Shown: positions 40,744 to 46,580 of the stretch, in pieces
How the letters are laid out: each line of letters begins with the position of its first letter
Position numbering within the stretch: position 1 is the stretch's first letter
Assembly (NCBI RefSeq): GCF_009834535.1
Contig: NC_045715.1
Coordinates: 17,980,001 to 18,044,000, forward strand
Reading direction: 5' to 3'
Length of the DNA: 64,000 nucleotides
From: Camelus ferus
Taxonomy: Eukaryota
Position numbers and translations under genes: made by a program
Notes under the pieces: model-generated
The model's input: the letters and a program-made list of their open reading frames with translations, nothing else
The model's database searches: none
What the model was told of the DNA's origin: nothing

Positions 40744-41124
40744 ATGCCTGAACCGGCTAAGTCCGCTCAGGCCCCGAAAAAGGGCTCCAAGAAGGCGGTG
40801 ACCAAGGCTCAGAAGAAGGACGGGAAGAAGCGCAAGCGGATCCGTAAGGAGAGCTACTCGGTGTACGTGTACAAGGTGCTGAAGCAGGTCCACCCGGACA
40901 CCGGCATCTCGTCCAAGGCCATGGGAATCATGAACTCGTTCGTCAACGACATTTTCGACCGCATCGNNNNNNNNNNNNNNNNNNNNNNNNNNNNNNNNNN
41001 NNNNNNNNNNNNNNNNNNNNNNNNNNNNNNNNNNNNNNNNNNNNNNNNNNNNNNNNNNNNNNNNNNNNNNNNNNNNNNNNNNNNNNNNNNNNNNNNNNNN
41101 NNNNNNNNNNNNNNNNNNNNNNNN
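40744..41124 (+). CDS. H2BC5-like H2B with P8Q, S32I, E71D (numbering without Met; Ns 40967-41137; end inferred)
   Basis: [38 protein letters not shown]...NDIFDRI; the C-terminal 40% is hidden, so intactness is unproven. Confidence 0.7.
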
Positions 41125-41160
41125 NNNNNNNNNNNNNGCGTTTTTACACCTAATCTCAAA

Positions 41161-41201
41161 GGCTCTTTTAAGAACCGTATATGTTTTTATTAAGTGAGTT
41201 G
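41161..41201 (+). terminator. Disrupted histone stem-loop (C-A mismatch) and diverged HDE
   Basis: GGCTCT-TTTA-AGAACC versus AGAGCC in unit A; AAGTGAGTTG 41192-41201. Confidence 0.9.
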
Positions 41202-43886
41202 TAATTCTTTTATTCCAATGGGCGACTTTTCAGATTTGTCCTGCCAAATTTAAAGCTCTGCCACCATTGTTTAATTTGCTAATGTACCTGCGTAGGAAAT
41301 GCTTGTAGGAAACCTAGCCAATGTGTGCCATAAACTGCGCGCTCACTATAAGCAAGTACAGTTACATAAAACCATGAATTATGTAGTATCACATAGCCAG
41401 ATATTAATTAACTTGCACTGAAAATGCCATTTCAAGTGTACAGCTTTCCTTTCCGTGTATAGGTCTGCATGTTGATCCTGCCATTGATCCGGGATTTGGC
41501 GATCAACTCATTCTGCTTAGAATTTTTCTTTTCCGTTTTTCTTTTTTTAAGCGTATAGACATTGTTTGTGAAAAAAAGGCTAAAGACTGTGAAGTTTCAC
41601 AGAAATAATTATAAAGGGTTTTCTGGTTTGCTTTCTTGAAAATTGGTCCGATTTCCTCTTGAGGCTCTGAACAGCGGGTGGGGGAGGTGGGGAAGGAGCC
41701 TGTGCTCCATCCTAAAGACACCGAGGGATAAGAACGGGAAGCCTTCTTTGACACGACTTCCAGTCAATCATATCAGTTACTTTACCTTCATTCTCTGAAA
41801 GTCCTATTCAATTCATAGTCCTTCTTCGGTAGCATTCAGATTTAAGGTCCTCAGGGTTACAAGACAGAAACCCACTCCTCAATCCGTTAAGATGTCTTGA
41901 CTCAGGACTGACGCCCCCTTTACAGCACCGTTTCCTCTTTCCCGGATGTCCCCGAGCATTGAGGGAGGAGAGGAAGTAGAAAGGGAAGAAAAGCCCCTTC
42001 TGGCTGGATGTGGTTTTGCTGCACGATGTAGCATAGCTTTAAGGGTGTTCGCTGCTGGAACAGATTTGTGGGGAAGTTAAATCTCTGGAATCTCGAAAAA
42101 GGGGCTGGGAGGGAGTGGCCTGGAGGAAAGGAATCAGTGGTCAGAGGTCACCAAGAAAACTGCAAAGTAGATGAGGCTGGAAAGGGAGGCAAGTGCTGGT
42201 TGAGGTGGAGAGTTTAGAAAGGGGGTGTTGTTGTCTAAGAGAGGAATGAATTTAGAAACCCTAGGGTTTGGGAGAAGGTGAGAACCCTAAACAGGTGCTC
42301 TGGATCACGGGGATAGATTTTCCATAATAGGGCAAGTGGGTACTTGGATGGACAATTAAAATCCAAAATAATACTTAAATTTACAAAACACTGTGAAGAG
42401 CCACTATGAAATAAGGAACTCTCATTCCCAGGTGCTTGACCCAGGGAAACCTCAAGCACCACAGCTAGCTTTCACCCAAACCTGAGCTTTGATTTTTAGA
42501 GTGTTATGTGAAGCCTGTCCGTGGTGGGGAGCATGATAAGGACTCTTTCCCACTGAAGCTGAGACACTAGACCAAAATGAACTAGAAATAAACACACACT
42601 CACCACAAATGATTGCAAAATCTGCCCTACCCTTGGTGCTGAACAAGTAGATTCCACCACTGAGAATTTGGCCTATAAGCCAGCCTTCACACTTAACTTG
42701 TTTCAGCATTAATACCACAGGGATTCAAAACACCTAGGCTGAGAATTTAATTTAGAGATAACCCCGACTGGTTTGGCGCCCCTGAGCACCTGATAAAAGC
42801 AAATACAAGTCCTCTCTTGAATAAGTTTCATTTTAGGTCTCAATCAATCTCCACAGATAAATATACAAGAAAATGAAAGCAGTTTCACAACCAAAATTAA
42901 CCAAACACATCATGAAACAAGTAACCTTGACCAAGAGCAATGAACTATGATAAAAAAAAAGCTAACATGAAAATTTATTTAAAATACAGATATTGAAACT
43001 GATGACTGAGTAATAGGAAAAAAATGTTTAAAGTGTAAGTTAACAATTAAGAGTTAGCAGAAAATAAAAGAAGAAACTAAAGAATTGAGTCATGAAAGTG
43101 TATAAGGAGATTCTTGATGTGTGCCTAAAAGCCCTAGTAAATTGTACCATGGAAATACCTTTTTTTTAAAATAAGTCATTGAAAGAGTATAAGTTAATTC
43201 ATTTAATAGATAGTCATTGACTATCTCTGGCTTCGTCATCTGCATGGTCACTGGAGATTCAGGGAAATAATGGTCGTCTTTGACCGGAAGCCCTCAGTTT
43301 TGTAAGGCTGTCAAGGAAGCTTACAATTAACTACTTTCATTTTCCTTTATCTTTCACTAAGAACCAAAAAAGTGTTTATCACTCCTTGCAAACCTACAGG
43401 CGGGTAAACAGACTTGGGCTCCTATGGGAACTACCATATTCATGCAATTGAGGCAAAAAAAAATCATCTCAATTTTTGAGTAATAAACAATATACAGTAA
43501 TATTAATACTATTGTGACACAGTGCAAATCTAAGGAACAGTCCATAGGACTACACTCATATCTGACACCAACCGCAGGGTTCAGAGTTCTCTCCAAAGCC
43601 ACCCTTGGATTAGATAATTTAATAGAAGGACTCACAGAACTCACCAAAAGCTATTATACTCAACATTAGGGTTTATTATACTAAAGGACACAAAGCAAAG
43701 TCAGCAAAGGGAAGAGACACATGAAGTAGAGTCTAGTCTTTTCCCAGTGGAGTCATGGAGCACTAACAACACCTCCCTGCAACAATGTGTGACAGCACAA
43801 TGCATATCACCAACTAGGGAAACTTACCTAAGCCTTGGTGTCCAGACTTCTGTTACGTCTTTCACATAATCAACCACTTGAACGGC

Positions 43887-44073
43887 AGCACAGGGAAATA
43901 ACATACAAGATCTTCTGGTAGCTCACAGTGGAAAAAAAAAAAAATGTGACAATGAATATATGTATGTTCATGTATAACTGAAAAATTGTGCTCTACACTG
44001 GAATTTGACACAAAATTGTAAAATGATTATAGCTCAATAAAAAAGTTTAAAAAAAACCCAAAACAACAAAAAA
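43887..44073 (+). mobile_element. 5'-truncated L1 3' end inserted in MER21, unit B only
   Basis: Same family as 540-728; degenerate 12-bp TSD cacttgaacggc 43875-43886 / cacctgaatggc 44074-44085; empty site cacctgagtggc at 17467-17478. Confidence 0.88.
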
Positions 44074-46184
44074 CACCTGAATGGCTGATCTTTAGTCTCC
44101 AGTTCCTCTGGAGGTAGTGCAGATACAGCATGGCCTAAAGCCCACAACATGAATAATATTATTCCACTAGTCCATTAGACTATTAGACCTATGATCCTAT
44201 TAGCTCAAGGCCTCCTGGTAAACAAAGATATTCTTAACATGTATTCCAAGGGCCTACAAGTTACCTTCCAGCAAAGGGCAAAGGCTAAACCTCTTTCAAT
44301 AAGGTTAATTCTGAATGCAATCATAAGAAACTATATAAGAAAGACTTTATTTTTCCAATTTTGAACTATATATCTATCAGTGACCATAACTTGAGTTCTA
44401 CAACTATTTGCTTTTTTATGATTGTTTTATCACATAGTTTTGTATATTTAGGTCACCTGTGGACCCAGAGATTGAGATTTCTGATGGAAGACAATTTTTC
44501 ATACTTTATTCAGATGAACAGCATCAGCAGTCTTCTTGATTTGTACTCCTAACTGCCCTCCAAACCCTAGGTGCAGGAAAAGAAGACTTAGGAAAGGTGA
44601 AGGTCTACATTGCGGGAATGTAGGTGTTCTTCACCTTCATGTTGGTGGCATGGGCATTTAGTGCTACATAGAAGAAAAAACTCAGTTTCTTGACATGAAA
44701 ACAGCACTTGACTTTCCCTTTCATAAACGATGAAATCTGCTGCCATGCACAGAGAACAGGAATTGTAGAAAAATAAAGGAGTTATGCTTTAGGATTTTAT
44801 TTTAAGTTTTTAACAGTGAATGTTAAGTTGTGTTTTATAAATACAAGACAATATACATATCCAGCCAAATTATGGCTGTTTTTTAGGAAAGAAGGAGGAG
44901 GATCATGGGACAAAAAGAAAGGTGAGACAAATTGAGGAGGACTCAGAAAAAGATTGGAAGAAGCAAACTGCTACTACAGAAGGGAGAGGAAGGGCCTGGA
45001 GACCAAAGAGAAGCCTATAGCGGACTGTGATGGGAGAGGCAGGAAGAATAAAGAGGAAGATGGCTGGATTGACCTTATGATGTATTTAGTATTTTCGCCA
45101 TGTATAAGACAAATCTGCTCCACGTTTCTTGGATTTTGAGTTGAATAGATTGATTAAAATGATATATCTGGGAGATGTTTTCTGACCAGTAGATGTAAAA
45201 TGGTACCTCTCTCTTCCCGTTTTTAACTTGCTCTATTAATTGTTCTTCATTATACTTAGAACTAATTGACATAAGTTTGTTTATTTTTTGTTTCCCCTTC
45301 CCATTCTCAAGACTGTTAAGCTCCATTGGGGCAGGGTTAGTCTTTTTTTTGCCACTGAGTCCCTAATGCTTTGGCTGTTTCAGACACAGACTACGCTCTC
45401 AGTAAATATTTGCAGCACGATGTAATCAATTAATTGAAATACACATAAGTCTGTAATAATAAAGATAGAGCGCAGGGCTGATTGTTGAAAATATTCAATT
45501 GAATGAGTGACTCAGCCTTTCTGGGTCTCACTTTCTTCATCTATACAAGGAGAATAAAAATCATACACTACTTCTTAGAGTTATTTTAAGGACTGAGATA
45601 ATTTGTTTAAGAAGCGTAGGGTATATAGCTTAGTGGTAGAGTGGGTTCAACTCCCAGTATGTCTATTAAATATATAAATAAATAATTACGCCCTCAAAAG
45701 TTAGGAAGAAAAAATTTTTTTTAAGTTTAAAAGAATTATAACCTTTTTTTTAAAGAAGGGATCATTTGTGTAAAGCTAAAGCTCTTTAAAAAGTTATGGA
45801 CATTTTGTAGGCACTTGGAAATTGTTATCTTTTCCTTAGTCACTGAATTAAAACGAAAATCAGAGAAGCTGATTCTCTTCAGATGAAAAACTAAAGGGAA
45901 ACAATATAAGCTTTTGATCTATTTGAATTCCACCCCAAGTGGGGTAGTTGGGGAATTTGGAACAAAGATCACATTATTCAGGAATATCTCTTGACTCAAT
46001 ATAATTTAAGTCATTATCTGTTCATGTTAGTAATGACTAAAATGTGCGTAACACTGGAGCGGAGATTCGTTGTAGCACATTATACAAGCATATGTAAACA
46101 GACCCCTCTTCATTGTGTAGCAGATATTAATGCTGATGGCAAAATGGCACCTAACATATAAACTTTTTAAATTACTTCAGTCAG

Positions 46185-46580
46185 GGCAGCAATATAAGTG
46201 CAAAGAACTGAATGCCAGCAGAAAGTGAAAATGAGAATCTGGCTGAGAAGTTATGAAGTATGATGTCCAGTCTGCCTGAGATGATTGATTAGTCTGTATA
46301 TCCCACCGAAATCCTATCCATCTGATTTACTGCACACTGATTTATGAAAAGGTGATCATTACCTGAGTGGAAGAGCATAAACAAGGTGTTTTAGCTTTTT
46401 CATTGTATTTATATTTGAATTAAAGAAATAGAATTTACTTCTGTAACAGGCCTAATTACAGGAATTCATTACTTACTGTGGACTACCTACCTTTGCTGGG
46501 GAAAGCCTGAATGAAAGGATGGCAAAATATCTGTATGTAAATGAGATGCTATAATTAATAAAATCTGTGGATAATTGGAA
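46185..46580 (+). other. Distal poly(A) terminal exon, unit-B copy
   Basis: CTAAC 46151-46155; acceptor AG 46183-46184; AATAAA 46557-46562; colinear with 19621-20012. Confidence 0.7.

Follow-up and report, generated by a model that had tools for sequence, protein, structure and literature searches.

The 64,000-nt stretch of Camelus ferus DNA analysed here (the window) carries a block of histone genes, H1-4 / H2BC5 / H2BC6 / H4C4, in a tandem duplication of ~26 kb. The gene under study is the H2BC5-like copy of unit B, which lies in an H1-H2B-H2B-H4 context. Its features are as follows, with the evidence used to place them.

40528–40673, + strand: proximal promoter of the unit-B H2BC5-like gene (direct reading)
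40528–40532: inverted CCAAT of this promoter
40555–40559 and 40621–40625: CCAAT boxes of this promoter
40650–40657: variant octamer ATTTGAAT of this promoter
40666–40673: TATAAATA of this promoter
40744–40966, + strand: visible H2B coding part, 74 codons plus 1 nt (translation, alignment to other H2B copies)
40967–41137, + strand: N run; expected content, codons 75–126, the stop (end expected at 41124) and ~13 nt of 3' UTR including the expected 5' splice site
41161–41176, + strand: defective histone 3' stem-loop GGCTCTTTTAAGAACC (reading, alignment, folding, Rfam, RNA contigs)
41177–46180, + strand: intron of the spliced H2BC5 model, with sense-strand transcription in unit B
41192–41202, + strand: HDE-like purine core AAGTGAGTTGT, a candidate HDE by position and composition (alignment)
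46151–46184, + strand: branch-point-like CTAAC (46151–46155), pyrimidine tract and two candidate acceptor AGs (direct reading)
46179–46180 and 46183–46184, + strand: the candidate acceptor AGs
46185–46580, + strand: distal exon, or the end of a read-through 3' UTR (AATAAA, poly(A) ends, unit-B letters)
46557–46562, + strand: AATAAA of the distal exon

The promoter, described as intact in a first-pass annotation made from the letters alone, has kept every element, and all of them are common to unit A. On alignment, the proximal 300 nt were 90% identical between the two units, and identity dropped to ~76% farther upstream. Translation from the ATG at 40744–40746 revealed no stop or frameshift in the 74 visible H2B codons. 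Over this visible part the gene is an intronless histone-fold ORF, placed in a histone cluster behind a CCAAT/TATA promoter. The replacements P8Q, S32I and E71D, read earlier from the same stretch, were all present in the visible translation; they set this copy apart from the consensus of the other H2B copies in the window, among which the protein is otherwise identical. Of the differences between the visible part and the unit-B H2BC6 copy, three are non-synonymous and 15 are synonymous. For an H2B, three replacements within 74 codons are many; S32I is a radical one, and all three have been seen in this genome only. H2B S32 is a known phosphorylation site and E71 a mutation-sensitive residue (PMC5834259; PMC10657182).

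The remainder of the coding region is masked. Each of the six N runs in the window falls on a coding or promoter segment of a histone gene. ATG and stem-loop are 410 nt apart in either copy of H2BC6, and in H2BC5 they are separated by 418 nt (unit A) vs 417 nt (unit B); because these distances are nearly equal, the N runs look like exact-length masks rather than gaps of estimated length. The right edge of the run at 40967–41137 is continuous, since two RNA contigs cross it, extending 33 letters beyond 41138 into the masked part. The 1-nt difference in length between the two H2BC5 copies falls inside the masked letters, and an indel there could be a frameshift in unit B. The expected 5' splice site (~41125–41137) is likewise masked, with only its last two letters, GC (41138–41139), visible.

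The first-pass annotation had proposed the gene as a candidate nascent variant, born by duplication. The non-coding DNA of the duplication has diverged by 8–16%, with 82–92% identity between units A and B outside conversion-like tracts, synonymous divergence in the visible H2B coding part is ~0.4 (dS; pairwise dN ~0.017), and the unit-B H1 that adjoins the H2BC5 copy is a frameshifted pseudogene. The duplication is therefore old, and the description of the gene as nascent has to be abandoned. Under neutrality since the duplication, 7–13 replacements would be expected in the visible coding sequence, as compared with the three found; the probability of three or fewer was 0.08, 0.008 and 0.0006 for per-lineage divergences of 0.04, 0.06 and 0.08 respectively. 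In simulations, a stop was expected in 32–52% of cases after 4–8% neutral divergence. At plausible divergences, neutral evolution throughout the time since the duplication is rejected for the visible coding part, whereas later relaxation is allowed: three replacements are what ~2% per-lineage neutral divergence would give, so that constraint may have been lost in the last quarter to half of the history of the copy.

The stem-loop reads GGCTCTTTTAAGAGCC in unit A and GGCTCTTTTAAGAACC in unit B. In unit B, A41174 stands opposite C41163, which confirms the C-A mismatch reported earlier at the third base pair, conventionally numbered C8-G19, and the first 3' flanking base after the stem is G instead of A (A>G vs unit A). 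The other five of the six stem pairs are canonical, and so are the UUUA loop and the CAAA 5' flank; the fully paired 6-bp stem that belongs to the conserved 16-nt stem-loop of replication-dependent histone genes is absent from this copy. Stem-loop-like matches in the window numbered nine, vs 0.22 expected by chance. Folding of the hairpin gave −2.6 kcal/mol for unit B vs −9.3 for unit A, a loss of 6.7, and unit B folded no better than shuffled sequence. Its Rfam Histone3 score of 18.0 bits was the lowest of the window's eight stem-loops, 11 bits below the 29.2 bits of the unit-A H2BC5 (gathering score 34); the seven others scored 26.5–36.7 bits, the lower figure being that of the dead H1 copy. 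The G>A change cripples the unit-B hairpin. We conclude that, by breaking the third pair of the SLBP stem, and together with the A>G change in the flank, it cripples the histone-type 3' end signal.

The candidate HDE, earlier described as drifted, has barely done so: its purine core is separated by a single A>G from that of unit A (AAATGAGTTGT in unit A, AAGTGAGTTGT in unit B), which is itself imperfect. The 30 nt after the stem contain six changes between the units, among them the one directly after it. High-affinity binding of SLBP requires an intact stem, and where the HDE is weak, histone processing relies more heavily on SLBP. When C8-G19 is disrupted in simulations, the adjacent G7 pair tends to be disturbed as well, and G7 makes the sole base-specific contacts with SLBP (PMC10388802).

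It is extremely improbable that the stem G>A reflects an error of sequencing or of assembly, the latter an objection which the first-pass annotation had raised against its own reading. RNA contigs of two independent runs, X14 and X38, match 41138–41445 without one differing letter, the X38 haplotype being ~0.4% different from the window elsewhere in the stretch, and several DNA runs under two organism labels contain 98–100% of the sampled words of 41138–41640. Because the X14 and X38 contigs carry the same letters, the change is not an assembly error, and this explanation is refuted as far as contigs can show.

Transcription was assessed from contigs, from sampled words of RNA runs and from a poly(A)-primed 10x single-cell run (X21), all being libraries that may contain pre-mRNA or DNA. 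Many RNA runs, from at least seven studies, contain unit-B-specific words from the distal exon and from the sequence that follows the stem-loop. In more than 13 RNA runs, 88–100% of the sampled words of 41138–41640 were present, although only 27 of 473 31-mers there are common to unit A; in the distal exon, where only 31% of 31-mers are common to unit A, the fraction of sampled words present in RNA runs reached 0.97. Sense reads outnumbered antisense reads by ~15:1 in the unit-B intron region in X21, and unit-B-specific contigs of X14 in this region had a depth of 365–1447. A high-copy repeat at ~43740–44140 is found in unit B only. The copy-specific transcripts predicted by the first-pass annotation are thus present, as unit-B-specific sense RNA past the stem-loop in many libraries.

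Unit-B RNA is also polyadenylated at the distal site, as had been proposed. Loose ends with poly(A) tails lie at 46579/46580 (X14) and 46576 (X21), ~15–18 nt after the AATAAA at 46557; the RNA is thus polyadenylated ~5.4 kb downstream. Unit-B letters were present in 54 of 261 reads at 46445 and in 51 of 232 at 46469; the unit-B share of distal-exon A+B reads in the poly(A)-primed single-cell run was ~20%, about a quarter of the unit A level. The earlier statement that the distal exon is retained stands for its signals, since CTAAC, AG and AATAAA are all present and the poly(A) site is used, and for its polyadenylated, unit-B-lettered RNA, as in a dual-mode H2BC5. It stands less well for the acceptor, a candidate whose pyrimidine tract is weaker than that of unit A, from which it differs by three T>A changes. 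The 96.7% identity of the distal exon to unit A is unexceptional, since 43 of 209 intron windows (21%) are at least as conserved. In the bin that spans the candidate acceptors (46079–46261), read depth was only 2.75 and no joints were reported, the donor lying in masked letters. Mature replication-dependent histone RNA ends 4–5 nt past the stem; no accumulation of read ends was noted for this copy in the contigs and the poly(A)-primed library, data in which stem-loop ends would not show. Unit B has kept its promoter, its distal poly(A) site and the visible part of its coding region, and its sense-strand RNA runs through the 5-kb intron region and is polyadenylated. Read-through is also seen for unit A, with deep intron coverage in X14, even though the stem-loop of that unit is intact; read-through alone is therefore no proof that the broken stem re-routes output.

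We give an even chance to the reading that the unit-B H2BC5 is a poly(A)-biased H2B paralogue in an old duplication, with a crippled 3' end signal and with codons 75–126 masked. The mismatched stem would be expected to bind SLBP poorly. As the candidate HDE appears weak even in the intact paralogue, poor SLBP binding would make U7-dependent cleavage inefficient, and most of the stable output would then be polyadenylated, either after splicing or with a long read-through 3' UTR. In that case the copy would act as a source of replication-uncoupled H2B transcript, exaggerating what human and cow H2BC5 already do. The earlier reading of the gene as a whole is thus partly supported. Its fullest form, a true lineage-specific replication-independent H2B variant with an intact ORF, poly(A)-only output owing to the broken stem-loop, and replacements under selection, seems to us rather unlikely. 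Were it true, S32I would remove the S32 phosphorylation site; E71D falls within the histone fold, at a residue sensitive to mutation, and P8Q in the tail.

A serious rival, possible though not probable, is that the copy is transcribed but decaying: long constrained, it would have lost its 3' end signal and would now be gathering replacements, while its RNA would reflect residual promoter activity up to the next usable poly(A) site and add nothing to chromatin. The broken stem-loop and changed 3' flank fit such a history, as do the weakened acceptor tract, the unexplained 1-nt length difference in the masked part and the frameshifted H1 next to it. So do P8Q, S32I and E71D, which alter a protein identical among the window's other copies, two of them at a phosphorylation site and a mutation-sensitive residue, and whose number fits ~2% neutral divergence per lineage. 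Loss of this gene is tolerated in the mouse, in which H2bc5 is a pseudogene (PMC5100578). Decay is harder to reconcile with 74 visible codons free of stop or frameshift, given the stop expected in 32–52% of simulations at 4–8% divergence, with the retention of all promoter elements, and with a poly(A) signal that is intact and used at an expression that is not negligible (~20% of A+B reads).

It is quite improbable, at the other extreme, that the unit-B H2BC5 is still an ordinary replication-dependent H2B gene, in which the mismatch is tolerated and stem-loop processing is accompanied by the usual minor H2BC5 poly(A) by-product. The stem-loop retains G7, its loop uridines and the 5' CAAA flank, five of six stem pairs are canonical, the candidate HDE core is one base from that of unit A, and unit A reads through too. 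However, the hairpin has lost 6.7 kcal/mol, down to the level of shuffled sequence, its Rfam score is 11 bits below that of its paralogue, and the conserved A after the stem is gone. Established knowledge also weighs against ordinary processing, as high-affinity SLBP binding needs an intact stem and a weak HDE adds to SLBP dependence.

The prevailing view of replication-independent histone variants is that they originate when a duplicated replication-coupled gene loses its stem-loop and becomes polyadenylated, and few intermediates between the two are known to us. As both 3' end modes are already available to H2BC5, a single point mutation in the stem is enough to give a duplicate a poly(A) bias; on the reading that we favour, a poly(A)-biased paralogue, the unit-B locus is a natural example of that state. 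With an intact ORF and conserved replacements, the locus would provide a simple natural experiment on SLBP processing in relation to a single stem base pair, and on the birth of variants. If the gene were a true variant, it would be a naturally caught intermediate on the way from canonical histone gene to variant, comparable to the murid H2B.E. If the ORF is broken, the locus would represent ordinary turnover of histone paralogues, as for mouse H2bc5.

The closest known system is the human and bovine H2BC5 (HIST1H2BD), which uses a donor lying after the stop codon and before the stem-loop to make a spliced, polyadenylated mRNA; loss of SLBP also leads to polyadenylated histone mRNA (Kari et al., 2013, PMC3661734; Lyons et al., 2016, PMC5100578). 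Like these genes, the gene described here adjoins an H1 gene and lies upstream of a second H2B and H4, its unit A copy begins MPEPTKSAPAP, and several kb downstream lies a distal exon that combines acceptor-like signals with a poly(A) signal, where polyadenylated RNA ends. Unlike them, unit B is an extra, lineage-specific paralogue with three amino-acid replacements, and the donor that defines the human isoform is masked in it. Since the unit-B stem-loop is broken, its histone-type 3' end is probably impaired, not merely bypassed as in human and cow.

Mouse H2bc5 (Hist1h2bd), the same member of the gene family, is a pseudogene (PMC5100578, Table 1). Its loss in another lineage indicates that the locus is dispensable and prone to decay, whereas the unit-B copy carries no visible disabling mutation in its first 74 codons and is still transcribed. 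H2B.E (mouse H2bc21/Hist2h2be), as summarized in PMC8857922 from Santoro and Dulac (2012), is a lineage-restricted replication-independent variant that differs from canonical H2B at five residues. It resembles the unit-B gene in being a near-canonical H2B in a replication-coupled cluster, with few replacements, in one lineage and with polyadenylated RNA. The distinct residues of H2B.E are described there as conserved among Muridae, with a demonstrated function, whereas the unit-B replacements are known from this genome alone, within 74 visible codons. Knock-down of SLBP, NELF or ARS2 gives rise to polyadenylated mRNA from histone genes, according to the work cited in PMC5100578. As proposed for unit B, failure of stem-loop-directed cleavage would there let the polymerase reach a downstream poly(A) site; the knock-down defect, as cited, acts in trans on all histone genes, whereas that of unit B is a cis mutation in one gene.

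A histone block is duplicated in tandem within the window, with unit A at ~12.7–37 kb and unit B at ~39–64 kb; gene names are suffixed -A or -B accordingly. The gene content of each unit is as follows.

H1, forward strand (+)
H2B with a distal poly(A) exon (H2BC5), forward strand (+)
Second H2B (H2BC6), forward strand (+)
H4, reverse strand (−)

Judged by gene order, by an H2B directly adjoining H1 and by the N-terminus of the unit A H2BC5 (MPEPTKSAPAP), the block fits the H1-4/H2BC5/H2BC6/H4C4 part of the major histone cluster of mammals. HIST1H2BD adjoins HIST1H1E (Lyons et al., PMC5100578). 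In H2BC6-A (29708–29888), position 3 is Leu (MPELAK) and not Pro as in the other copies. Rfam placed two tRNA genes above threshold in the window and three tRNA-like matches below it; those at 22153 and 48635 fell just below and occupy corresponding positions in the two units.

tRNA genes and tRNA-like matches in the window
2725–2796 (+)
59985–60057 (−)
22153–22224 (+), tRNA-like, unit A
48635–48706 (+), tRNA-like, unit B
62725–62797 (+)

The stem-loop of H2BC5-B (41161–41176) reads GGCTCTTTTAAGAACC, in which A41174 is unable to pair with C41163. The predicted stability of the hairpin is −2.6 kcal/mol, as compared with −9.3 kcal/mol in unit A and three other genes, and on folding it performed no better than shuffled sequence. 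It also had the lowest Rfam Histone3 score of the eight stem-loops in the window when these were compared at the E-value threshold; the gathering threshold picked up the H1-A stem-loop only.

Rfam Histone3 scores of the stem-loops in the window
H1-A, 36.7
H2BC6-A, 33.9
H4-A, 33.8
H2BC6-B, 33.2
H2BC5-A, 29.2
H4-B, 28.7
H1-B (dead gene; stem-loop with C5>T, GGCTTTTTTCAGAGCC), 26.5 bits
H2BC5-B, 18.0

H2BC5-B therefore lacks the fully paired stem-loop by which replication-dependent histone genes are defined. SLBP requires an intact stem, and histone genes with a weak HDE rely on SLBP more heavily. The HDE of H2BC5-B had been described in the first-pass annotation as drifted, which overstates the case: one A>G is all that separates its HDE-like purine core from that of unit A. 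The first base 3' of the stem is likewise changed from A to G relative to unit A. The mismatched pair is C8–G19 in the usual numbering and adjoins G7, which makes the sole base-specific contacts with SLBP; in simulations, opening of C8–G19 also tends to disturb the neighbouring G7 pair (PMC10388802).

Contigs of two RNA runs, X14 and X38, had zero differing letters from the window across 41138–41445. Elsewhere in the 5.5-kb stretch X38 differed from the window at ~22 positions, indicating that it represents an independent haplotype. The DNA run X27 had no contig across the first 180 nt and hence is uninformative at the stem site. Agreement between two independent runs rules out misassembly as the source of the G>A change; an artefact of this kind is effectively refuted, and we give it almost no weight. 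The broken stem-loop, as read in the window, is real.

In at least seven studies, RNA runs contained 88–100% of the sampled words 3' of the H2BC5-B stem-loop, and for its distal exon the share in RNA runs reached 97%; 27 of the 473 31-mers in 41138–41640 and 115 of the 366 in the distal exon are common to unit A. In the poly(A)-primed single-cell 10x run X21, the sense strand predominated ~15:1 among reads across the 5-kb intervening region, and depth climbed to 100–140 over the 350 nt leading up to the poly(A) site. Poly(A) tails were seen as pure-A loose ends from 46576 in X21 and as A-tails from 46579/46580 in X14 contigs. At 46445 and 46469, two sites that discriminate the units and are passable by reads of both copies, unit-B letters were found in 54/261 and 51/232 X21 reads, respectively, the rest having unit-A letters. 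Other letters that tell the two copies apart include 41174 with its flanks, 46187–46216, 46307/46308, 46337, 46346 and a 4-nt insertion at 46532–46535. This places unit-B polyadenylated RNA at about one-quarter of the unit A level in this sample. Copy-specific transcripts of H2BC5-B, with unit-B letters and poly(A) tails, are thus present.

The distal exon was proposed to be retained. Its branch motif CTAAC, candidate acceptor AGs (46179–46180 and 46183–46184) and AATAAA (46557–46562) are in place; the acceptor pyrimidine tract is less well preserved, with T>A at three positions compared with unit A. The expected donor falls within masked letters and few reads reached the acceptor, and no splice junction was seen. 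Unit-B-specific intron contigs in X14 had depths of 365–1447 as compared with ~962 for the unit-B exon contig, which suggests much unspliced read-through. However, unit-A-type intron contigs were equally deep (1237–1983), so that the locus or the library, rather than the broken stem, accounts for intron coverage in X14, and read-through is weakened as proof of re-routing. In both units the regions between stem-loop and distal exon (14717–20020 and 41138–46580) were about as deep as the exon in X14, which suggests that unspliced RNA from read-through is abundant or that another transcript crosses the interval. A high-copy interspersed repeat at ~43740–44140 in the unit-B intron, where depth reached 10^5 in all runs, is absent from unit A and forms a gap in the alignment of the two units.

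The promoter of H2BC5-B is intact, as had been stated. Its inverted CCAAT, two CCAAT boxes, ATTTGAAT octamer variant and TATA box are all common to unit A, with 90% identity over the proximal 300 nt. In H2BC5-A (14223–14230) and H2BC5-B (40650–40657), ATTTGAAT replaces the H2B octamer ATTTGCAT just 5' of the TATA box; perfect octamers are retained in both H2BC6 copies (29628–29635; 55269–55276; 55327–55334). This variant could be linked to less S-phase-bound expression of H2BC5.

Translation from the ATG at 40744 and alignment to the other H2B copies bore out the three reported substitutions: P8Q, S32I and E71D are the only differences from the consensus of those copies in the 74 visible codons. 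S32I is radical and E71D conservative; P8Q falls within the variable tail. S32 of H2B is a reported phosphorylation site (PMC5834259), and mutation of E71 raises dimer exchange and impairs growth in yeast (PMC10657182). The replacements are compatible with relaxed constraint as well as with a variant-specific sequence.

The rest of the coding region lies in an N run (40967–41137). Each of the six N runs in the window overlies a histone coding or promoter segment. ATG and stem-loop are 410 nt apart in both H2BC6 copies, 418 nt in H2BC5-A and 417 nt in H2BC5-B, the H2BC5 values matching expectation for a 381-nt CDS and a short 3' UTR; the N runs thus look like masks of exact length, not gaps whose size was estimated. 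Two contigs derived from RNA reach 33 letters past 41138 into the masked part, so its right edge is continuous sequence. No indels separate the two H2BC5 copies in their visible parts, so their 1-nt length difference must sit in masked letters, where it is either harmless, in the ~13–20 nt of masked 3' UTR, or a frameshift in codons 75–126.

The gene had also been called nascent, a description that does not fit the age of the duplication. The two units align as a mosaic, with identity of 82–92% over most non-coding DNA, 84% in the 200 nt 3' of the H2B gene, ~76% on the 5' side of the promoter and 96–100% in certain tracts. The H2BC6 pair has a dS of 0.42, and H1-B (39039–39742), 75–86% identical to H1-A, is a pseudogene in which a 2-nt deletion in the part coding for the C-terminal tail leaves an ORF of 131 aa instead of 218 aa. 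Together these indicate that the duplication is old. The 96–100% tracts look like gene conversion, the alternative being conserved non-coding elements; they include 41938–42537 (versus ~15540–16140), 44338–44937 and 58836–61098 (versus 32365–34448), in surroundings of 85–91%, with 100% identity at 42138–42337. The distal exon is 96.7% identical to unit A, but in a mosaic with tracts of 98–100%, where 43/209 intron windows are at least as conserved, this was dropped as a sign of selection. Comparisons of dN/dS were made against the H2BC6 copies, the unit A H2BC5 CDS being masked after codon 11.

We consider the most likely mechanism, with about even confidence, to be a cis mutation disabling SLBP-dependent cleavage in a gene with a pre-existing downstream poly(A) route. 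The stem mutation, whose effect on the predicted structure is directly supported, would abolish SLBP binding and with it stem-loop ends. Polymerase would then run on past the stem, where sense transcription was observed, and the RNA would be polyadenylated at 46576–80, where unit-B tails were found, whether or not the 5-kb intron is removed. H2BC5-B would then be a source of replication-uncoupled H2B transcripts, possibly poly(A)-only and perhaps spliced and translated. Normal processing despite the mismatch is unlikely, given the requirement of SLBP for an intact stem; the nearly unchanged HDE core would be compatible with it.

That H2BC5-B is instead a transcribed copy becoming a pseudogene is a substantial, if less favoured, possibility. 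In simulations of neutral decay, the visible CDS acquired 6.8, 10.0 and 13.1 replacements at per-lineage divergences of 0.04, 0.06 and 0.08, the probability of three or fewer, as observed, being 0.08, 0.008 and 0.0006, respectively; a stop codon arose in 32–52% of simulations. This argues for purifying selection during most of the life of the gene. Three replacements are also the expectation of ~2% neutral divergence, so loss of constraint could date to the last quarter to half of its history. Whether H2BC5-B is classed as a histone variant or a pseudogene depends on the hidden ORF, the visible reading covering 74 codons only.

With a real stem-loop defect and polyadenylated expression, the original interpretation of H2BC5-B as a poly(A)-only H2B variant is partly supported. 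Human and cow H2BC5 produce a spliced polyadenylated mRNA from a donor between stop codon and stem-loop; in mouse the orthologous gene is a pseudogene (PMC3661734; PMC5100578). H2B.E is a lineage-restricted, near-canonical, replication-independent H2B inside a replication-coupled cluster (PMC8857922). As compared with human and cow H2BC5, H2BC5-B is one more paralogue of a dual-mode gene that is already known, with its histone-type mode damaged in cis.
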